The notes under the pieces were generated by a model, which made no database searches, was not told where the DNA came from, and saw nothing but the letters and a program-made list of their open reading frames with translations. DNA of 64,000 nt, taken from IMG/VR virus record IMGVR_UViG_3300042934_000980, positions 1-64,000 of that record, one strand, 5' to 3'. The translations under genes were made by a program, and so were the position numbers. Below are positions 3,208 to 17,787 of this stretch, in pieces. The number at the start of each line of letters is the position of its first letter. Position 1 is the first letter of the stretch.

Positions 3208-3723
3208 CTACTCAGGGCGCCTTGGAGGGGCCTCTGGGACGGTGTTGTCCTCGGGGTAATCCAGTCTTCCGTAAGCCGGAGGGGGAGGAGGTGCCGGAGG
3301 AGGTGTTTCAGGACGATTCACTGGGTGACTGGGTGGTGCAATGATCTCTGCCATCTTGCCGCGGATCTTGGTGGTGAGCGAGGTGCCCTCCAGCAAAGTC
3401 GACAGCGTCTTGTTGGCGTTGATCCAGGTCCAGGCACAGATGATCGGACCGACGTTCATGATCAACATTATCATCATGTCCGGCCAGCCTTGTCCGGCAG
3501 TCACCGAGTGGTTCACGCTCCAGGCGTTCATCAACGCCGCGATGCAGGTGGTCAGTACGGCCAGTGTGCCTGTCAAGTTACGCAGCATCACTGTCCACTT
3601 ACCAAAGACTTCGCGTTCAATGCCACCTGGGTTGTTGCTGGGTACTTCAATGTTGAAGGCAGGCTCCACCATCACAGGGACAGGCTTGCCCTCTTCATTG
3701 GGGGTCTGGGTTGGATCGGTCAT
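3208..3723 (-). CDS. Two-TM membrane protein, holin candidate
   Basis: Two hydrophobic helices (LTGTLAVLTTCIAALMNAW; MMIMLIMNVGPIICAWTWI) and a Pro-rich C-terminal tail; adjacent to the spanins. The start at 3723 has a GGAG RBS. Confidence 0.45.
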   Translation of the reverse strand: MTDPTQTPNEEGKPVPVMVEPAFNIEVPSNNPGGIEREVFGKWTVMLRNLTGTLAVLTTCIAALMNAWSVNHSVTAGQGWPDMMIMLIMNVGPIICAWTWINANKTLSTLLEGTSLTTKIRGKMAEIIAPPSHPVNRPETPPPAPPPPPAYGRLDYPEDNTVPEAPPRRPE

Positions 3724-4309
3724 CGGGGAATACTCCATAATGCTTAGCTATCACTTCACAGCGATAAAGAGTGACGGCCCCGGCATCGACAGAGTGTTCG
3801 TCCATCAATGCAAGATCATGATCCCCTGGGTTCAGCCACGTGTAATTAAGAAGGCCTTGTGCAACATCATCTTTGGTCATACCCCGACCCGTGACCCCCA
3901 CAATAGCCTTGGCCAAGTTAGGCAAGACCATGGACAGGTGCACGTCGCGTGACGTACAGGTCTCACGCAACATGCCCACGCACTGGATCAACTGCTTAAA
4001 CGTGAGTGCACTCATGCCCAAGAAGTTGTCTTCGCAGATCGCAGTGTCCGGCTTGTAGGTGTCGATCAGGATACCCAGACTTCGTCCCATGCAGTAACTA
4101 CGCGCCATCACCCGTGTGCTGGCCAGGTCATCAAACTGAACTGGCACGTCATACAGGATCTTTTCGCCGTAGATGGTGTTTCCATACACCAGTTGAAAAG
4201 GCTCAGGCTTCTCAATGTTCACGTCAACGAACCAGACGCCCATGTTGGTGGTAGACGGGTCAATACCCATGACCCGGTACACACCTGGATGATTCATACC
4301 CTTAGACAT
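3695..4309 (-). CDS. ruvC: RuvC-like Holliday junction resolvase
   Basis: Catalytic motifs VMGIDPSTTNMG, AICED and DEHSVDAG of the RuvC/RNase H fold. Confidence 0.85.
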   Translation of the reverse strand: MSKGMNHPGVYRVMGIDPSTTNMGVWFVDVNIEKPEPFQLVYGNTIYGEKILYDVPVQFDDLASTRVMARSYCMGRSLGILIDTYKPDTAICEDNFLGMSALTFKQLIQCVGMLRETCTSRDVHLSMVLPNLAKAIVGVTGRGMTKDDVAQGLLNYTWLNPGDHDLALMDEHSVDAGAVTLYRCEVIAKHYGVFPDDRSNPDPQ

Positions 4310-8686: not shown

Positions 8687-8707
8687 AATTCACTCATGAG
8701 GTTCATA

Positions 8708-11683
8708 ATGGCTAGGGAAACTCGTCATGGTACGAGAGGGAATGTCTCGGTAGACTACACAGCCCTACGGGCCGACATAAACAACATCAACCCGGTTGTA
8801 AAGGCAACCCTGCGTAACGCGGTGCCTCGCAACGGTACCCAACCTGAACGTGATGAGCTTCAGGGTACAACGACGGTCAACCCTTTTAAGTTGCAGCGGC
8901 TGAGTAACATCATCAGTGCCAACATTAACGCCGCCAGCGACCTGCGCCAGATTACGCCCTATATTGATAAGGCTGAGCTGATCTGGAGCACCATTTTGCT
9001 GTACCCCAACGGCAAACAAGACAAGACCCTCAACTACGACACCAAGCCGTCCAAGCTCAAGAATGCTAAGCTGCACGATGAGTTGCTGCGTAAGTGGGAT
9101 AACTATTACACGAACGACTATAAAATCGAGGCAGACCTGCGCTCGATTATTAACGACGTGTTGTGGAATACCGGCAGTTACACCCTGTTCAACTTAAGCC
9201 GTCCAGGCCTTGATTACCTGATCAACGGCAGCGAGATGGAAAGTGTGGCAGGTCAGGAATCCTTCAAGGAGCAAGCTAAGGCTGCAATTGACCAAGAGTT
9301 TGAGATGGTCGACGGCAAACTCCTGGCACGTAACTTGGGCACCTTTGTGCGTGACCCCAATGCCAAGGACCAGAAATCATCGGTCAGCGGTTTGGAATCG
9401 CTTTTCACCGGTCGGGCTAACTACAAAGGCACCGAGTTCAAACTCTTTAGCGGCACGGAGTTTGAAGGTGCTGAGTTCCCTATCACCCTGACGGACAACC
9501 CGGCGCTGTTGTACACCCAAAAGTTCAACGAAGTGACACGGCGCAATGATGTAAGCCAGGTCATGGGCACTGAGGACTTAAACCTTGTCATTCACCGTTC
9601 GGTTGCAAAGGACAAGAAAAAGAGAAAGCCCACCGACCCTAAGGCCACCACGCAAAACCTGTCTGAAGAACAAGCCGAAGCGATCAGCCACGGCCTGTTC
9701 CCCAACCGTAACGTGGCCAGCCAGAGCATTCAGTTTGTTAAGGGTTCTGATACCCTTAAGAGTCCTCTGTACGGGCGTGGTCTGACTTGGCACGTGCCGT
9801 CTGAAGCGGTGGTTCCTATTCACCGCCAGGGCAGCAATGGGCAAAAGCAAGACTTCATCTTGCTGGTGGATGACGACGGTAACTTTCTGAAGAACACCGC
9901 CGATGCGGACTACTATCAGAGCGCCAAGTCCACCACCGGCTCGATCGCCAACGCCCCTAAAGGCGGCAGCACCGATTCGTTGATCTCCAACCTGAAGAAG
10001 ATTCAGGATGGCAAGGAATGCGACTTTGACATGCAAGAGTTTGCGGAGATGAGTAAGTCCATCATCATCCGTCAATTCATGTCCTCGATCTTGAGCGGTA
10101 AAGGTGACAACATCAGTATCAGTATTGATGAAGAAACCAACAAGATCTTCTTGGCCCGCCTGTTCAAGAAGCAAGGGGTGCGGTGCTTGTACGTGCCGGG
10201 TGAGTCGATCACCTACATTGCACTCAAGCACAACCGCATGGGGATCGGGCAGTCGTTGACCCAGACCGCCAAGATGCACATTGCGCGTCTGGCCGCCTTT
10301 GACGTCGCTGACGCCATGGCTAACCTGGAAGCTGCTCAACCCCACACCCTGATGGAGATCAACATCCAGAAGGAAGACCCGGACCCTGCACACAGCATCG
10401 CCGTGGCTCGTGGGGTGTTCTTTGAAGCCAACCCACGCTTGCACAGCATTCTGAGTACCGCGCAACTGTCGGTGCCTCAGATTGTCGACGCCCTGCGCGA
10501 GTCCTCGCTGACGGTTAAGATCAACGCCGGTGATAACCCGCACATCCCTGCGCCTGACATTAACTTGTCACACATGGATAAGCAAACGTTCAAGCCGGTG
10601 GACCAAGGCAGCCGGGAGGAGGTGCTGAACAAGATCTCCAACTACTTCTTCTTGCCGCGCAGTTGGCTGGACGTGGTGGACGGGGGTGAGAACAACTTTC
10701 AGATCGAGGCGTTGGTTGAACACCAAATGCTGCTGAACCAAGGGGCCAACTGGCAGGAACAGCTGGCGGCGTTCATCATCGACTTTGAGCGCAAGCACGC
10801 CGCAGTCAACGGGCCCTTGCTCAATGACTTGGTGGACACCATCGTTGAGAACAAGACCCTGTGGACGCCCGATAGCAAGGAACCTGTCGACGGCAAGCTG
10901 CCCGAAGAAGTCCGCATTAAGCTGATCTTGAATGACTTTCTGAACAACCTTTATTGCTGGTTGCCGACCCCAAGCAGTACGGAGTCGACCAACAAGCTTA
11001 AGGAGAAGCTGGAAGCCATTAACGATCTGGTTGAGGCTTGGCAGGAGATCTCCGGGTACACCCAGGTGATGGAGCCTATCTGCAAGGTGCTGGGGCTGGA
11101 TAAGGAAGACTTCACCCCAGATCAGATCAAGGCCTCGCTTAAAGCGATATTCCTGACTGAAGCCTTCAAGCGCTACAACATCCCGATGCCGTTTGACGAC
11201 ATCGTGAACGAAGGTAAAGGCGGTGGTATGGCGTCGTTGATTAACGCCATGGTCTTCCAGCGGGCAAACGTGGGTGAGTTCTTGGCCAAGTTTGCTATCG
11301 ACGTGGCCGGGGCTGATAAGAAGCTGGTGGCCTCTCACCAAGCCAAGATCGCCAAAGCCATGACTGCACTGGAAGCGGTAATGGCACCGGAGGATGAAGG
11401 CGGCGAGGGCGGGCTTGACGCGGATAACCCAGCGGATAGCTTGGCTGCAGCTGACGACGGCGAGGGTGAGGACGACTTGGACGATCTGGGCGGTGGTCTG
11501 GATGACGACGACGGCGGTGCACCTGCCGACGACGCACCAGAAGACGGGGAAGAGGAAGAAGAGCCAGAAAGCGAGGAAGATGACAGCGGCACTGACGGGG
11601 GTGGTGATACTCCTGACGATGACGCAGGTGCCATCGACCCTGCTGACAATGACCCTAACCACAACCCGTTTGGCACTAAATAA
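8708..11683 (+). CDS. Portal protein (phiKZ gp129-like)
   Basis: ~990 aa, head-to-head with the gp128-like gene. G-x-E sites (AGQESF, SGLESL) and a very acidic C-terminal tail. Start MARETR at 8708 follows GAGG. Confidence 0.7.
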   Translation: MARETRHGTRGNVSVDYTALRADINNINPVVKATLRNAVPRNGTQPERDELQGTTTVNPFKLQRLSNIISANINAASDLRQITPYIDKAELIWSTILLYPNGKQDKTLNYDTKPSKLKNAKLHDELLRKWDNYYTNDYKIEADLRSIINDVLWNTGSYTLFNLSRPGLDYLINGSEMESVAGQESFKEQAKAAIDQEFEMVDGKLLARNLGTFVRDPNAKDQKSSVSGLESLFTGRANYKGTEFKLFSGTEFEGAEFPITLTDNPALLYTQKFNEVTRRNDVSQVMGTEDLNLVIHRSVAKDKKKRKPTDPKATTQNLSEEQAEAISHGLFPNRNVASQSIQFVKGSDTLKSPLYGRGLTWHVPSEAVVPIHRQGSNGQKQDFILLVDDDGNFLKNTADADYYQSAKSTTGSIANAPKGGSTDSLISNLKKIQDGKECDFDMQEFAEMSKSIIIRQFMSSILSGKGDNISISIDEETNKIFLARLFKKQGVRCLYVPGESITYIALKHNRMGIGQSLTQTAKMHIARLAAFDVADAMANLEAAQPHTLMEINIQKEDPDPAHSIAVARGVFFEANPRLHSILSTAQLSVPQIVDALRESSLTVKINAGDNPHIPAPDINLSHMDKQTFKPVDQGSREEVLNKISNYFFLPRSWLDVVDGGENNFQIEALVEHQMLLNQGANWQEQLAAFIIDFERKHAAVNGPLLNDLVDTIVENKTLWTPDSKEPVDGKLPEEVRIKLILNDFLNNLYCWLPTPSSTESTNKLKEKLEAINDLVEAWQEISGYTQVMEPICKVLGLDKEDFTPDQIKASLKAIFLTEAFKRYNIPMPFDDIVNEGKGGGMASLINAMVFQRANVGEFLAKFAIDVAGADKKLVASHQAKIAKAMTALEAVMAPEDEGGEGGLDADNPADSLAAADDGEGEDDLDDLGGGLDDDDGGAPADDAPEDGEEEEEPESEEDDSGTDGGGDTPDDDAGAIDPADNDPNHNPFGTK

Positions 11684-11708: not shown

Positions 11709-11740
11709 CTGGTACCTCGGGCTAATGCCCGAGGTACCAG
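11709..11740. terminator. Bidirectional hairpin
   Basis: 14-bp perfect stem CTGGTACCTCGGGC-TAAT-GCCCGAGGTACCAG between convergent genes, with an A-tract to the left. Confidence 0.8.
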
Positions 11741-11755
11741 TAGCCTTATAGCCGC

Positions 11756-12412
11756 TTACAGATGTTCTTCTAGATGTGCGTGGATCATCCAACCTGGGTA
11801 CTGGGTTTTGAGTTCCCGGTACAGCTCGGTGGTCTGACGCAGTTGGTCTGGGTTGACCACAGGGTCTTTAAGGTCGATCCTGGTAGGGTCACCCACAATC
11901 AATACAGGGTTAGCCGCCTCCATGATAGGGCCTAGACTGGCCATGTTCTTGATCCCTTCCACCAGCAAATGGAATACGCGGGTCGCTTGTGGGATGTACA
12001 GTGGCCAGTTTCGGTTCTCTTCAACGATGTTGAAGATGTGTCCGATGGCCGCCATGACGACCTGGATGTCGTAGGACAAATCCCCGGTGGTCTGGAAGTG
12101 TTTGAGGCGGACCGTGAAGTAATTGGATCCGTGAACTTCAAACGCTCGTTCTAGGAAATCGTGGTCGAACTTGATGTTGCTGTTGGGGTCTACCAGCGCT
12201 CGGGTCCCCTTGGTCTCAGCAAGTGCAACAGGGGTTGGTTTAAGTGGCTTAGGAGTAGGCTTAGCCGGTTTAAGGCGCTCTTTTATCAACCTGATCAACT
12301 GGTTCTTAGCAGGGGGCTTTAAAGCTTCCAAATGGGGAGGAAGCTCTTGGGTCTGATAAATGTTGTAATAACTCAACAACTCAACAAGCTGCTCATTGGT
12401 AAGCTCCGACAT
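11756..12412 (-). CDS. Accessory protein with N-terminal helix-extension-helix-like module
   Basis: 218 aa; N-terminus MSELTNEQLVELLSYYNI...LIRLIKERL followed by a Pro/Lys linker. Confidence 0.6.
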   Translation of the reverse strand: MSELTNEQLVELLSYYNIYQTQELPPHLEALKPPAKNQLIRLIKERLKPAKPTPKPLKPTPVALAETKGTRALVDPNSNIKFDHDFLERAFEVHGSNYFTVRLKHFQTTGDLSYDIQVVMAAIGHIFNIVEENRNWPLYIPQATRVFHLLVEGIKNMASLGPIMEAANPVLIVGDPTRIDLKDPVVNPDQLRQTTELYRELKTQYPGWMIHAHLEEHL

Positions 12413-12448
12413 AATACTTCTACTACCTTCTCAAACAAATTAAGGAAC

Positions 12449-12474
12449 CCGTGGGGATAAACCACTCCCCACGG
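12449..12474 (-). terminator. Hairpin (terminator or processing site)
   Basis: 9-bp stem CCGTGGGGA/TCCCCACGG. Confidence 0.55.
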
Positions 12475-12490
12475 AACGTACCGCCTTAAC

Positions 12491-13465
12491 TTAGACGGTG
12501 GTGATAAAATGCATCGGGGTGGAGTTACGGTCACGCATACCTGCGGACAAGATCCAACCGTCGTAGTTGCGTGTTGTCACCGCAGCCAAACCCGGCGCGA
12601 GCGTGTCTACTGGAGCAACCTCAAGCAACCACTGCTCTTTCTCGTGCAGCGCGTAAGGGTAATCTTTAAGACGCGTTCTGATGCTGTCGTGCAGTGCATG
12701 CAACTTGGCGAAACGTTCGGGTTGGCTCATCGCGTCATCCGTGTCAAGCTCCGGGTAAGCTCGGTCCATGTAGGCGTTCCAGAGGTTGTCAAAGGTTTCG
12801 TCTTTGTCCCGGCCCAGCTTAAAGCTTACCAAAGCACTCCGAACATGCGGTTCGTTCTGAAGGTTGCTTTCGGTAGCAGATGTGGAAAGGGAGCACTGTG
12901 TTTGGCTCAGCTCACGGCGCACCAGTTCCAACAGTTCCAGCCCGTCGGGCAGGTTTGCGGCTTTTTGGCTGTGGTTGAACGGATGGATCTGGGTCAACGA
13001 GTACGCTGCCAGTTTATCCGCCAGCACCGAGCCTGATGCAACCTTGGAAGTGTAGGGACGCACTCCCAAAAAGAGCGGTCTCGGTGCTGGGACATCCCGC
13101 ACCTCTGACGGCCCAGGTTTAAGCTCATACACCTTGGGTGCGTTCGCATCACCTCGATTCTTCATGACAATGAATTCGTGACTGACCCCGAAAGGTTCAT
13201 TGGCGATGATCGAGAACTTGACCCGGTTTTTACCGTACGGTTCGTTCGAGTAGTAATGCACTTTGACCACCACGTCGTATTTCGTGGCCAACAGGTGGTT
13301 GATCTCTTGGTGACGCTCAAAGAAGCGTTCAGGGATCAGCACCGCGGCGTCGTCATCGAACATCGGTTGAAGGCACGCATTGGCGATGGGGGGCATGGTC
13401 ATCTTCTGTTCACCGAACATACCGGACAGGTCGAAGATGTACACTTTTGGAAGTTGGATACTCAT
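12491..13465 (-). CDS. Hypothetical accessory protein
   Basis: 324-aa ORF with an AAGGA RBS; no family recognised. Confidence 0.6.
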   Translation of the reverse strand: MSIQLPKVYIFDLSGMFGEQKMTMPPIANACLQPMFDDDAAVLIPERFFERHQEINHLLATKYDVVVKVHYYSNEPYGKNRVKFSIIANEPFGVSHEFIVMKNRGDANAPKVYELKPGPSEVRDVPAPRPLFLGVRPYTSKVASGSVLADKLAAYSLTQIHPFNHSQKAANLPDGLELLELVRRELSQTQCSLSTSATESNLQNEPHVRSALVSFKLGRDKDETFDNLWNAYMDRAYPELDTDDAMSQPERFAKLHALHDSIRTRLKDYPYALHEKEQWLLEVAPVDTLAPGLAAVTTRNYDGWILSAGMRDRNSTPMHFITTV

Positions 13466-13499
13466 GGCTAGTTTCCTTGTTACTGAATGTGGGTGAGAT

Positions 13500-14051
13500 T
13501 TACTTGGTGTTGTGCAGCCGGCGTTGAATTTCTTCGATCAGCTCTGTACCGGTGGGCAGCTCTTTACCCTTGAGGTACTCAGGTGCTGATTGGAAAGCCA
13601 GCAAACGGTTGCAACCGAGCAGGTTGGCGATGTCGCGGTTGGACAAGTGGCTGTAGTCCTTGGCGGGTACTTCGGTCGGCCCTGGGATCTGGTGCCCCAT
13701 GTGTTGGGTCGACACCACCGAGTCATCACTGTGGTCAACGGGAACGAGTTGGAAGTACCAGCCCTGGTAGTTAGTGAGAGGAGCAAAGTTCTTCTCGGCA
13801 CCAGTTGGGTGCTCAGGACGGGTTTGCCCGGGCTCTATGTTCTCGATCACGAAAGTGACCACGTGATCCCGCGTGGCACCCGATGCCACTACACCGTCGT
13901 AGATATCAAGCGCACGCTTCCACACACGGTCTGGATGCAGATTTTCAGGCCAGCTGGACAGCAGAGCTACTTCACGCAGCCGACGGGCCAGCCACTTCAT
14001 GCGCTCTGGGTGTTGCAGAGTACCGCTCTGGTTCAGGTCGATCTTGATCAT
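13500..14051 (-). CDS. Accessory protein with C-terminal helix-extension-helix-like module
   Basis: ATG at 14051 after GGAG; C-terminus HLSNRDIANLL...ELIEEIQRRL. Confidence 0.6.
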   Translation of the reverse strand: MIKIDLNQSGTLQHPERMKWLARRLREVALLSSWPENLHPDRVWKRALDIYDGVVASGATRDHVVTFVIENIEPGQTRPEHPTGAEKNFAPLTNYQGWYFQLVPVDHSDDSVVSTQHMGHQIPGPTEVPAKDYSHLSNRDIANLLGCNRLLAFQSAPEYLKGKELPTGTELIEEIQRRLHNTK

Positions 14052-14099: not shown

Positions 14100-14906
14100 T
14101 TACTTAGGCTCCTCTTTCTTTTCTGGGACCTGAACGGCATCCATCAGTTTCAAAGGCAGTATCTGACAGTAATGCCCTTCCAAACTATTTTTAAAAGCCT
14201 CTTGGTATTCGGCGTCGTGTGCGGGTTTTTCCTTGAGCAGTATATCCAATGGCCGGAAACGGTACTCGATTGTTTGGTCCTGTTCATTGATGACGAAACT
14301 ACCAACGTTCTCGTGGGTTTGCCAGAAGTGGAACTGGATTTGTTTGCCCTCTGTTGCATCACCCACACGTCGGCCCGAGAAGCGCCACACATGGCCGTTT
14401 GAGTAGATGTGCTTAAAGGTTTCCTTTCCCTCGGTCATGAAGATACGCCAATCAGAGAAGTCGGCCTTAATTTCAAGACGACAGACGTCGCCCTTATACG
14501 CTTTGCACGCTTCTTGAATGTTGATTACTTCTCCAACTTGTCGCAGGTAACTACGCCAGAAGCTTAACGGTTTGTCTGGTGTTTGTTTGAGCAAAAGGTC
14601 AATGGCTTCATCCGGGATATACCTGCCCCAACAATCTCGCTCCACCACCCAAGAAACACGGTAAACCTCACCCATGTACGGAACGGGCTTGATCGGTTGC
14701 ATGATCGCCAGACGTTCAGCGATGGCGGCCAGTACGCCGCGGGCTTCATCTGACATTGGCAGGTAACTGGCCAGAGTAGCTGCTTTCAACCCCAACACTT
14801 GGGTGGGTAGACCGAAGGTATTATCGTAGCTATTATGGACTTGGTTGGTCAGGGTGTTTTCCCCGAGCATGATCTTGGTCAACGGAGTTTTAGTGTAAGG
14901 TGACAT
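14100..14906 (-). CDS. Hypothetical accessory protein
   Basis: 268-aa ORF with a GGGAG RBS. Confidence 0.6.
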   Translation of the reverse strand: MSPYTKTPLTKIMLGENTLTNQVHNSYDNTFGLPTQVLGLKAATLASYLPMSDEARGVLAAIAERLAIMQPIKPVPYMGEVYRVSWVVERDCWGRYIPDEAIDLLLKQTPDKPLSFWRSYLRQVGEVINIQEACKAYKGDVCRLEIKADFSDWRIFMTEGKETFKHIYSNGHVWRFSGRRVGDATEGKQIQFHFWQTHENVGSFVINEQDQTIEYRFRPLDILLKEKPAHDAEYQEAFKNSLEGHYCQILPLKLMDAVQVPEKKEEPK

Positions 14907-14976: not shown

Positions 14977-15312
14977 TTACAGGCCGCTGACTTTACCGAT
15001 CGAGCCACCGACCATGGCGCCCAGCTGAGCACAGCTGATGCCGAAGCTTGCCGAGATGGCACCGGTCAGAATCTTGGCACCGGTACCGCAGTGGTTGGAG
15101 AATGGGGACAGGAGAGTACCCATGCCGTAACCGCCGATTGCGCCGGCCACAGCGCCGACTACACCTGCGCCTACCGATTGACCTTGAGCGACGGCTACCA
15201 CGCCACCGAGCAGGCCGCCCACTACACCGCAGACTTCCGAGACAGCTACGCCGTCGTTACGAACGCCCATGATGCCTTTGTATTCAGTGTTTTCTTGAGC
15301 TTGATTAGTCAT
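14977..15312 (-). CDS. Small glycine-zipper membrane protein
   Basis: 111 aa with repeated GxxxG (GVVGGLLGG, GAGVVGAVAGAIGGYGMG) in hydrophobic segments. Confidence 0.65.
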   Translation of the reverse strand: MTNQAQENTEYKGIMGVRNDGVAVSEVCGVVGGLLGGVVAVAQGQSVGAGVVGAVAGAIGGYGMGTLLSPFSNHCGTGAKILTGAISASFGISCAQLGAMVGGSIGKVSGL

Positions 15313-15388: not shown

Positions 15389-15402
15389 CAAACTGTAAGT
15401 TA

Positions 15403-15452
15403 AAAATAAAAAGAACGAATAGAGTCCTGCCCAGGTTTCCCCGGGCAGGCTC
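15403..15452 (-). terminator. Intrinsic terminator of the nvRNAP operon
   Basis: Stem CCTGCCC/GGGCAGG followed on the minus strand by a T-rich tract (TTCGTTCTTTTTATTTTT). Confidence 0.7.
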
Positions 15453-15477: not shown

Positions 15478-17787
15478 TCAGTCCAAACTCAAAAACACCA
15501 GTGGGTTACGACGCGATACGTGGCGCAATGTTGCCATGTTCTTGTCGATCGCCGAATAGCTAAACAGCCAGAGGTTCTCACTGCTTTGGGTAAAGCAGAT
15601 CAACTTGTCAGTGACTTCAACCGACTGCTCGCCCATAGTCGAAGCAAAGCCTTTCTCGATCACATCGAAGTATTCCGGGAACGTGCTACGTTTCATGACG
15701 ACGGGCAGGTTCGTGTCGGTGTAGATCGGGCCGCCTTTTTGGTTGACGAAAGTGACAGAGAGGTTACGCTCCAGCACCAGTTCTTGTTCACGCTTGATCT
15801 GCTCGATCGCCCCCAGCTCTTGGTCGCCCGCTTTAAACGGATGGCCGAAGGTAAACAGCTTCAGGCTCTCGGTCAGGTAGTGCGGCTTGTCAACTTGGTT
15901 GAACAGACGAAACATCATCTCGTCGGTTTTGTCCAGGTGCAGGTCCAGCTCATCGTGGTCGCGGATGAGGCTTTCCACCGACAGGTGGTGCGGTTGATGA
16001 GGGAATGGGTCATACCCACCGGCGTTGATCAGGTAATCATTGAAGATTGCGGTAAGGCGCTCATCAATGAAGTCACACAGCTCACGGCTGATGATGCCGG
16101 CCTTGAAGTACCCCAGCATTTTCTTGCACGCTTCAAACAAGCTGGGCTGGTTCTGGATCTTGCTGTCCTTAAACAGGAACGGCAGGTCGTGGAACAAGCG
16201 AATCTTGTCTTCTGGGCTTTCGCAGTCAAAGGTGTCCCAGATCGTGCTGTTAAAGCTCACTGCGTTGGGGGTGGTGATCTTGCCGGCCAAGCGCTGGTTG
16301 ACTGCTGTCAGGGTGCTTTCCAATTGCTTGGAGTTGTTAGCCACCACCACGTCTTTAACGGCGATCACCGGCAAAGCTGCATCGAGCGCATTGAACGTGT
16401 CCAGCTCGATCTCAGTCGGCTTGTCGGTCTTAACCAGCTCTTCCATCGGATACGCCACCACCGACATCACACCGCCGCCGGTAGGGTTTTCGAGCAGCGG
16501 CAAGAGTTTAGTGGGGTCGGTTAACACGGTTGCCATGTCAAGGTCCTCGCTTCTTACCAGGGTACTGAACCACCCACTGTCCGCTTCCAGGTCGATGATC
16601 ACGATCCGGAAACAGCCGGGTTGTACCGTTTGTTCTTGGCCCATTTCTGGGTGTTTGCGAAACGCGTGTTTGATCTGTTTCCAATCGGATTCAGGAATCA
16701 CGTAATGCTTGGGTTTGCCGATGCTGTTAAAGAACCGACCCAGTTGGAACTCAGCCTTGTTCTCCGGAGTGAGGTTGTTGATGTCATTACGAATTTTGTT
16801 CCAACGCTCCTCCTCAAACATGCTGTTGACCCGCGCCGCTTGAAAGCCTGTTGCTTCGCCACGATACTCCCGCGCACCGCGGTGGATCATGTCGTACACA
16901 TCTTTCATGCTGCTGTTGTCGGCTGGCGCACCGGTCATGCCGTTGTTGCCGTACAGATAATCAGCGCCTGCCTCATAGCGCAGGTTCTGAATGTCGGTAC
17001 GCACCGGAGCTTTAACCTCAAAGGTCAGGCCGGCGTAAGGGTTGTTAACCCCAAAGGCTGCACACGCGGTGTTGACCACATCGTTCATCTTTTCCAGGTT
17101 GGGCATCTTGCTGGCCAGGTCCTTAGGAAGCGCCCGGGCGTGCAGTTGACCTTCTTGGGTTTTCATCAACCACTGGACCATCTCAAAGAACAAGATAGAC
17201 CGGATGGCGATTTCTGCCGCTTGCAGGTATTGATTGGCGTTGAGCTCGTCTTTACCGGTTTCGCGTTTGATGTTGATGATCCGCCAGCCAAACAATGGCG
17301 CGGCGGCAATAGCCACTGGACGGTTGAACTCGTGGTGCTTGGAGAATGTTGTCACAAACGCTTCACGGACACCACAGGGGTTGCCGATCTCGTTGCGACG
17401 AAAGCTTTCCAAGGTCTGGCGGTACACCTCATAGAACTTACCCATGCGGGCAATGATCTGTTGCATGAAGAGCACGTTCACCGGGGCAACTTGCGCTGCC
17501 ATGTACTGCATGGAATCTTGATCCGGGCCGGACGCATTGACAATTTCTTGAATGCCCGAATCGTAGCCAGCGCCTTGGTTGTACTGCTCCCACTTAATCG
17601 TGGAACCGTGCATCCCAACTTGGCCGCCTTCAGACATCTGGCGCATGATGGCCATGGGGTCTTGCTGTTGCATCATCCCCATTTGACCAGCACCTGGGTT
17701 GGCGCGGCTCGCCATACCTGGCATGGACTGTGGGACTTGTACAGCGGCACTCGGTCGCAGTAGATTGCCGGGATTGTTCTGTTGCAT
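15478..17787 (-). CDS. Conserved phiKZ-like protein downstream of the nvRNAP subunit; Q/M/G-rich N-terminus
   Basis: 769-aa ORF in the operon with the RNAP subunit; low-complexity first ~90 aa. Confidence 0.65.
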   Translation of the reverse strand: MQQNNPGNLLRPSAAVQVPQSMPGMASRANPGAGQMGMMQQQDPMAIMRQMSEGGQVGMHGSTIKWEQYNQGAGYDSGIQEIVNASGPDQDSMQYMAAQVAPVNVLFMQQIIARMGKFYEVYRQTLESFRRNEIGNPCGVREAFVTTFSKHHEFNRPVAIAAAPLFGWRIINIKRETGKDELNANQYLQAAEIAIRSILFFEMVQWLMKTQEGQLHARALPKDLASKMPNLEKMNDVVNTACAAFGVNNPYAGLTFEVKAPVRTDIQNLRYEAGADYLYGNNGMTGAPADNSSMKDVYDMIHRGAREYRGEATGFQAARVNSMFEEERWNKIRNDINNLTPENKAEFQLGRFFNSIGKPKHYVIPESDWKQIKHAFRKHPEMGQEQTVQPGCFRIVIIDLEADSGWFSTLVRSEDLDMATVLTDPTKLLPLLENPTGGGVMSVVAYPMEELVKTDKPTEIELDTFNALDAALPVIAVKDVVVANNSKQLESTLTAVNQRLAGKITTPNAVSFNSTIWDTFDCESPEDKIRLFHDLPFLFKDSKIQNQPSLFEACKKMLGYFKAGIISRELCDFIDERLTAIFNDYLINAGGYDPFPHQPHHLSVESLIRDHDELDLHLDKTDEMMFRLFNQVDKPHYLTESLKLFTFGHPFKAGDQELGAIEQIKREQELVLERNLSVTFVNQKGGPIYTDTNLPVVMKRSTFPEYFDVIEKGFASTMGEQSVEVTDKLICFTQSSENLWLFSYSAIDKNMATLRHVSRRNPLVFLSLD

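Follow-up and report, generated by a model that had tools for sequence, protein, structure and literature searches.

A small conserved domain in different positions in three neighboring accessory proteins of a jumbo phage related to Pseudomonas phage EL

We report here that three consecutive minus-strand genes of an uncultivated jumbo phage, designated B (183 amino acids [aa]), C (324 aa), and A (218 aa), almost certainly each encode one copy of a conserved, autonomous domain of approximately 48 residues, named M in this study, and that M defines a lineage-specific family whose members lie in an accessory gene island and are joined to varied domains. The genes were found in the first 64 kb of the 220,495-bp virus record IMGVR_UViG_3300042934_000980 (G+C content, 54%); this stretch of 64,000 nucleotides is referred to below as the window. 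The record is classed as linear in IMG/VR and is 96% complete by CheckV estimate. Its nearest cultured relative is Pseudomonas phage EL: a 769-aa protein has 41% identity to EL gp81 and 28% to RisingSun gp86, and the EL order of the genes for the DnaB helicase, the phiKZ-type major capsid protein, the "polymerase," and gp81 is kept. Jumbo phages carry hundreds of orphan genes and offer very few handles for grouping them; three orphans of this genome and more than 30 metagenomic proteins now form one family. The three copies of M and the genes that encode them are as follows.

12272..12403, minus strand: M copy 1, N-terminal, residues 4-47 of A (A is protein P0001 of the family; E = 2.9e-20 to the profile)
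12263-12412, minus strand: M copy 1 at its family-level extent, residues 1-50 of A
11756..12412, minus strand: gene A, 218 aa; M, a Pro/Lys-rich linker (approximately residues 48-78), and a C-terminal alpha/beta domain with a terminal YPGW
12908..13039, minus strand: M copy 2, internal, residues 143-186 of C (E = 1.3e-18 to the 36-row profile)
12491..13465, minus strand: gene C, 324 aa; an N-terminal beta-rich domain, M, a linker, and a C-terminal domain with a terminal YDGW
13515..13646, minus strand: M copy 3, C-terminal, residues 136-179 of B
13500..14051, minus strand: gene B, 183 aa; an N-terminal domain (residues 1 to approximately 105, with motifs WP and YQGW), a conserved linker, and M

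Residues 4-47 of A align without gaps to residues 136-179 of B, with 13 identities in 44 positions and a BLOSUM62 score of 54, which was reached by none of 2,000 shuffles of B (mean, 15.6; standard deviation, 6.1). Among 61,345 windows of 44 residues, taken from 220 open reading frames (ORFs) of the whole genome, each segment was the best non-self match of the other, and the second-best match of both was the same spot in C, residues 143-186 (scores of 31 and 43; background maxima of 29 and 27). This shared site led us to conclude that each of the three adjacent genes holds one copy, at the N terminus of A, within C, and at the C terminus of B. BLASTP of C against B gave an E value of 3e-4. Leave-one-out hidden Markov models (HMMs) found B from A and C (E = 0.0011), C from B and A (E = 0.049), and A from B and C (E = 0.8); this evidence is weaker than that from the family profile described below, to which A, B, and C matched over nearly its whole length with 60 to 78 bits (E = 2.6e-17 to 7e-23). 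The profile search found no M copy in this genome beyond those in A, B, and C.

It could be argued that the resemblance between A and B is a chance likeness of two amphipathic, leucine-rich helical segments, since BLASTP of A against B did not report the segment and phmmer searches with single segments over the ORF set were not significant (E = 0.7 to 0.85). However, the shuffles, the reciprocal best matches, and the common third copy in C all speak against chance, as does a family of more than 30 members with E values down to 1e-10 among 1.84 billion proteins. The genome-window control, the family search, and the near-gap-free alignment of the family rule this explanation out, and we regard its likelihood as negligible. 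The initial annotation of the window had described the ungapped match between the N terminus of A and the C terminus of B, with its 13 identities, and these controls bear it out; the end of the span that it gave, 12272 to 13649, lies one codon beyond the aligned segment.

An exhaustive search of 1.84 billion proteins with a profile of the M copies returned 40 proteins at an E value cutoff of ≤1e-3. Five repetitive proteins with many partial stretches were set aside, and approximately 33 of the 40 had a single, near-full-length match, so that the HMM scan for further members that had been suggested in the initial annotation has extended the family well beyond the third copy in C. The alignment of 36 copies is almost without gaps; one proline and two leucines are invariant, and a leucine, a glycine, and an arginine are nearly so. 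The pattern is aromatic-x-x-L-[ST]-N-x-[DE]-L-x-x-L-L ... P-x-G-x-[ED]-L-[IL]-x-x-[IV]-x-x-R-L, with the proline in the conserved loop, and A, B, and C have both the full-length profile match and this pattern. The domain opens with a short aromatic lead-in, followed by a helix of 14 residues, a conserved loop of 16 residues that ends in P-x-G, and a helix of 15 residues that ends in R-L.

All of the M carriers found by the profile search are metagenomic, and several are encoded on contigs of 209 to 232 kb. Among 37 carriers, a count that includes A and three B-type proteins, 18 have M at the N terminus, 14 have it at an internal position, and 5 have it at the C terminus. Some proteins consist of little more than M, namely, P0007 (79 aa), P0023 (85 aa), P0015 (73 aa), and gp72 of phage EL (81 aa). 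The orthologues of A are P0030, P0032, and P0041, and A also matches a 247-aa gene of locus L004 (E = 1.1e-20); the orthologues of C are P0038, P0034, and P0008. When B is compared with an orthologue that is 56% identical to it, conservation is highest in M, and orthologues also back the ATG start of B at position 14051. It was also observed that five proteins of 450 to 630 aa (P0011, P0018, P0019, P0022, and P0024) have M flanked on both sides by extended low-complexity linkers with many G, M, P, N, F, and Y residues; these linkers are absent from A, B, and C, with a Pro/Lys-rich linker in A instead.

EL gp72 (YP_418105.1, a hypothetical protein) makes M available in a cultured system. It starts with M, which matched the profile with an E value of 1.2e-4 for the EL genome and is 51% identical over 45 residues to the M domain of P0045 (E = 2e-11). 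It differs in that its loop is shorter by approximately 6 residues, it consists of hardly anything besides M, and its gene lies outside the island, approximately 10 kb upstream and ahead of the DnaB gene. The M profile had no match in phiKZ, OBP, or RisingSun.

Other searches were negative. There was no match for A, B, C, or the neighboring island protein E in Pfam, PHROGs, NCBIfam, or PADLOC; no Pfam family in 10 full-length M carriers; no tblastn match for A, B, P0016, or P0011 in 50,697 phage records; no megablast match for the region; and no match in IMG/VR scans with A, B, and C. A word-based protein search returned only A itself for A, one orthologue with 56% identity for B, and nothing for C. 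C itself was not returned by that search, and its public gene call may have a different start or may be missing. By sequence, M is absent from Pfam-A, PHROGs v4, NCBIfam, PADLOC, and PDB and is, to that extent, a previously undescribed family of small domains. As judged by its predicted helices and its placement, it is a portable helical module that has been recombined among phage accessory proteins, which is a familiar kind of module.

Both here and in each of the eight related loci (L001, L003 to L005, and L014 to L017), the M genes are grouped in a single island, with the gp81 homologue on one side and, on the other, a convergent gene that encodes a virion protein of approximately 1,000 aa. 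Seven of the eight loci (L003, L004, L005, and L014 to L017) have two or three tandem M genes; L001 has one M gene, and its contig ends right after it. The island is hypervariable, with 1 gene in RisingSun, 21 in EL (gp82 to gp102), and 5 here, and its first gene, for a Gly-rich protein of approximately 110 aa, is the only island gene conserved across EL, RisingSun, and the metagenomic relatives. The EL island thus has the same chromosomal position and the same first gene as the island described here, but its other gene content is unrelated; phmmer found no match (E ≤ 0.1) between the EL island ORFs and A, B, C, or E. Within the EL island, gp99 is homologous to PhiKZ014, an abundant protein directed at the 50S subunit of the host ribosome from the very start of infection (PMC10914614). 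Because the EL island holds gp99, there is by analogy a hint, and no more than a hint, that islands of this kind can hold host-directed proteins.

The order of domains differs among the three proteins: M precedes the flanking domain in A (M-D), follows it in B (D-M), and has a domain on either side in C (X-M-D). The M copies of A, B, and C are only 18 to 28% identical to each other; in contrast, they are 44 to 58% identical to copies in other phages, and orthologues of A, B, and C keep M in the same position. Judging from these identities and positions, the three modules are an old paralogous set, with no recent exchange within this genome, and the layout goes back to old gene fusion, fission, or permutation. 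A change of order between lineages can be traced in one case. The profile of the N-terminal domain of B matched residues 69-174 of P0045 (hhalign probability, 95%; E = 3.6e-8; BLASTP E = 8e-4), and P0045, encoded by a 194-aa gene in the L003 island, has M at its N terminus, in a short-loop variant unlike the type in B. On this alignment, the domain order changes between lineages, with D-M in B and M-D in P0045. M therefore offers a clean natural example of domain-order change inside a hypervariable accessory island.

The origin of B is suggested by its relatives. Its M domain is 47 to 52% identical to the N-terminal M domains of P0013 and P0006 (47% for P0013; E = 9e-17), and the likeness reaches into the lead-in before helix 1; the remainder of P0013 and P0006 has no match to B. 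The module identities suggest that the M domain of B may nest within the N-terminal type. In five relatives a gene of 118 to 121 aa directly abuts the gene with N-terminal M, with a 10-nucleotide gap or an ATGA overlap; these short genes are at the following positions.

L005, 4495-4857: 118- to 121-aa gene
L014, 4084-4449: 118- to 121-aa gene
L015, 7626-7991: 118- to 121-aa gene
L016, 9635-9991: 118- to 121-aa gene
L017, 9645-10004: 118- to 121-aa gene

A five-row profile of these genes matched the N-terminal domain of B weakly (P = 0.0045 over 36 columns), and the single sequence of the 121-aa gene upstream of P0013 did not establish identity with the B domain. It is a reasonable but unproven proposal that B is a fusion of a gene of this type with the M domain of its neighbor.

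The impression in the initial annotation that A and B look unrelated outside M holds only in part: the profiles of the domains that flank M in A, B, and C are weakly similar (P = 0.003, 0.046, and 0.063), and these domains have the motifs WP and Y-x-G-W in common. Pairwise Smith-Waterman comparisons of the flanking domains were not significant, apart from a short P-E-R-F stretch inside C, the score of which was reached by 3 of 300 shuffles and which we treat as unproven; hhalign found no similarity of the N-terminal domain of C to the N-terminal domain of B or to the C-terminal domain of C itself. On these comparisons, common descent of the flanking domains is not established.

What M does was considered next to what it resembles. 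The initial annotation had labeled the module as LEM-, SAP-, or Rho-N-like, and it is true that in M two helices flank an extended linker of 16 residues, an arrangement that, together with the L-[ST]-N-x-[DE]-L at its start and the L-I-x-x-I-x-x-R-L at its end, recalls the motifs of helix-extension-helix (HEH) domains. Like SAP, LEM, HeH, and Rho_N domains, M is a unit of 35 to 50 residues with two helices and an extended conserved linker and is portable across protein positions. The label found no support in any of the searches made, however. The Pfam models for SAP, LEM, HeH, and Rho_N (which we take to be PF02037, PF03020, PF12949, and PF07498, respectively) matched neither the three window copies nor the 36 family copies in hmmscan at an E value of ≤10; HMMER filters drop most matches above approximately 0.1, so that only a very weak Pfam likeness could have escaped. 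A profile search of all PDB sequences had a best E value of 0.5 and no LEM or HeH chain at an E value of ≤10, and hhalign of the 36-row M profile against residues 1-60 of E. coli Rho gave a P value of 0.61 with one aligned column. The only Pfam hit seen repeatedly was a Crp helix-turn-helix, matched by 3 of the 36 copies, with a best E value of 0.059 and 13.5 bits against a cutoff of 21, covering 13 residues of helix 1; this could be taken to favor nucleic acid binding, but as a subthreshold and partial match it was rejected as an identity for M.

The AlphaFold2 (AF2) model of B, from a four-row alignment, was usable only in M (predicted local distance difference test [pLDDT], 64 to 77), with helices at residues 138-151 and 168-182 and a 16-residue linker; the low-confidence model of C (pLDDT, 41.5) had the same layout, with helices at residues 147-158 and 175-188, and the linker length is conserved in the 36 copies. 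Fold searches (VIA-wide and Foldseek against PDB), of the kind that the initial annotation had called for, returned no meaningful neighbor, and neither did two Atlas searches, which were uninformative. SAP is a motif of approximately 35 residues in which two helices are joined by a short turn of approximately 5 residues, and LEM-like linkers are longer than those of SAP; in the LEM and HeH fold, a long extended linker spans two helices that run roughly parallel. The predicted 16-residue linker of M is not a short turn, and its layout may fit a LEM-like shape better than a SAP-like one, although only in a generic way. The M core has a mean net charge of −1.2 (range, −4 to +4) in the 36 copies, of which 25 are negative, and there is one nearly invariant basic column, the arginine before the final leucine. 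This neutral-to-acidic charge, which is a proxy only for nucleic acid binding, gives no hint of a nucleic acid-binding tag, and no DNA-related partner domain was found in the carriers, of which 10 full-length members were scanned with Pfam. Taken together, these findings make it unlikely that M belongs among the HEH domains of the SAP, LEM, HeH, or Rho-N type and anchors the proteins that carry it to DNA or RNA. The portability that the initial annotation had read into the module, in contrast, is retained, since M is carried at N-terminal, internal, and C-terminal positions; what finds no support in its "portable targeting tag" is the LEM, SAP, or Rho-N label.

Our best guess is that docking or oligomerization fits M better than a DNA tether, because M is independent of position, is set off by flexible linkers, occurs almost alone in some proteins, has mostly hydrophobic conserved positions, and is encoded by two or three neighboring genes per genome. 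We propose that M is probably a protein-protein docking or oligomerization domain, tethered by flexible linkers. M-M contacts may pair the two or three carriers that neighboring genes encode in each genome, with a small helical bundle as the probable form; alternatively, M may dock its carriers onto one shared partner. There are small helical docking and dimerization modules, such as helical-hairpin dimers and the docking domains of modular enzymes, that likewise occur at any position, behind flexible linkers, with hydrophobic conserved positions and several carriers per genome; the comparison is a functional analogy rather than one of homology, as M has no detectable sequence or fold relationship to them. 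The predicted complex of the M domains of B and A had a median interaction prediction score from aligned errors (ipSAE) of 0.44 in three runs, and the best control had 0.02. Agreement of contacts between the runs was at least 90%, the pLDDT of the partner was at least 73, and the pLDDT of M with unrelated partners fell to 43 to 56; the verdict was "weak support." Of 80 solved complexes, 58 attained the mark used for this score, as did 2 of 110 mismatched pairs, although scores of ≤0.60 included only 7 of the 80 solved complexes and yet both of the passing mismatches; as custom alignments were used, these calibration counts hold roughly.

Several points weigh against pairing. According to the calibration of the tool, a prediction that scores in this range will be wrong more often than right unless the pairing was already likely on other grounds, and short amphipathic helices pair readily in silico. 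The whole-protein AF2 models were poor (pLDDT of 41 for C and 51 for B), so that they define M no further than its secondary structure. Finally, tandem co-occurrence fits a shared external partner equally well. Docking by M-M pairing is therefore put forward tentatively, as a model that we consider plausible and hold somewhat short of belief. The related idea, that M docks its carriers as an address tag onto a common partner without M, either a phage structure (the nucleus shell, the import machinery, or the procapsid) or a host complex, is close to the "targeting tag" of the initial annotation minus DNA; the procapsid is among the candidates because the island lies among virion genes. The function of M at any position behind flexible linkers and the presence of several carriers per genome would suit such a partner, as would the presence in the EL island of a homologue of PhiKZ014, which targets the 50S subunit (PMC10914614). 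Against it stands the absence of any M match in phiKZ, OBP, and RisingSun, so that any partner would have to be lineage specific or fast evolving, and we regard a common partner as possible but doubtful. Probes for chimallin, the nuclear shell protein of the nucleus-forming phages (Chimalliviridae), namely, phiKZ gp54 and Pfam PF25677, had no match in this genome, yet they had none in EL either, which shows that the probes are too narrow.

Another way to account for the change of order is that M and the domain next to it together form one composite fold, of which M is a structural element, and that D-M and M-D are circular permutations of one globular unit. The same D domain does occur in opposite orders in B and P0045, and WP and Y-x-G-W recur, with weak profile similarity, in the domains beside M in A, B, C, and many relatives. 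However, proteins with M alone exist, M is set apart from its neighbors by long linkers that are proline rich or of low complexity, one M type is attached to unrelated remainders, and the M domain of P0045 is the short-loop variant and not the type found in B. We judge a composite fold improbable. If M proves to be a docking or address tag, as the docking model envisions, it would provide a simple route to find and retarget the accessory proteins of this lineage. One can also imagine, as a speculation to which we would give little weight, that M is an address or assembly label of EL-like jumbo phages that gathers changing accessory proteins into a hetero-oligomeric body or onto a phage-built compartment, in which case new effectors could be recruited simply through fusion to M. 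The G/M/P/N/F/Y-rich linkers around M in relatives might point to a condensate-like or pore-associated assembly.

The remaining features of the island and its flanks are as follows.

14100..14906, minus strand: gene E, 268 aa, an island gene without M; orthologue in L001, weaker relatives in L003
14940..14963, minus strand: intrinsic-terminator-like hairpin, after the 111-aa gene
14977..15312, minus strand: gene for a 111-aa Gly-rich protein, the first island gene; E = 4.8e-12 to the EL locus and 0.011 to RisingSun
15393..15411, minus strand: promoter-like 19-nucleotide motif upstream of the island, similar to the annotated phage promoters of EL
15478..17787, minus strand: gp81 homologue, 769 aa, the conserved upstream flank of the island; 41% identity to EL gp81
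8696..11683, plus strand: gene for a 995-aa virion structural protein, the conserved convergent downstream flank; phrog_3004, E = 1e-241; counterpart of EL gp103 and RisingSun gp88

The 111-aa Gly-rich protein has its EL counterpart at the gp82 position and its RisingSun counterpart in gp87; its composition suggests that it may be a small membrane protein. The 19-nucleotide motif, TTTTATTTTTAACTTACAG, resembles the two "putative phage promoter" features of EL. It is present in four near-identical genomic copies upstream of genes, at 15393-15411 in the window and near positions 111224, 157723, and 196261 of the genome, with a variant near 141226, all on the minus strand, and it probably represents a class of phage promoter. 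There are also two GC-rich hairpins in the region, one at 11709-11740, between the convergent genes for A and the 995-aa virion protein, and one at 12450-12473, between C and A; with a T run that is offset or weak, neither received a score in the terminator scan.

One further EL-like record, that of Pseudomonas phage vB_PQ1 (PQ516283.1; L011), has its capsid, polymerase, and gp81 genes broken into many short coding sequences, with "CRISPR" repeat features annotated inside the split major capsid protein, polymerase, and gp81 genes. It looks like a frameshift-ridden assembly and was left out of the comparisons because of these apparent frameshifts. In the L003 island there are apparently two E-like genes (1895-2605 and 3220-3927) that have the motif D-[FL]-S-D-W-R in common with E, one of which stands between the B-like gene and the C-like gene.

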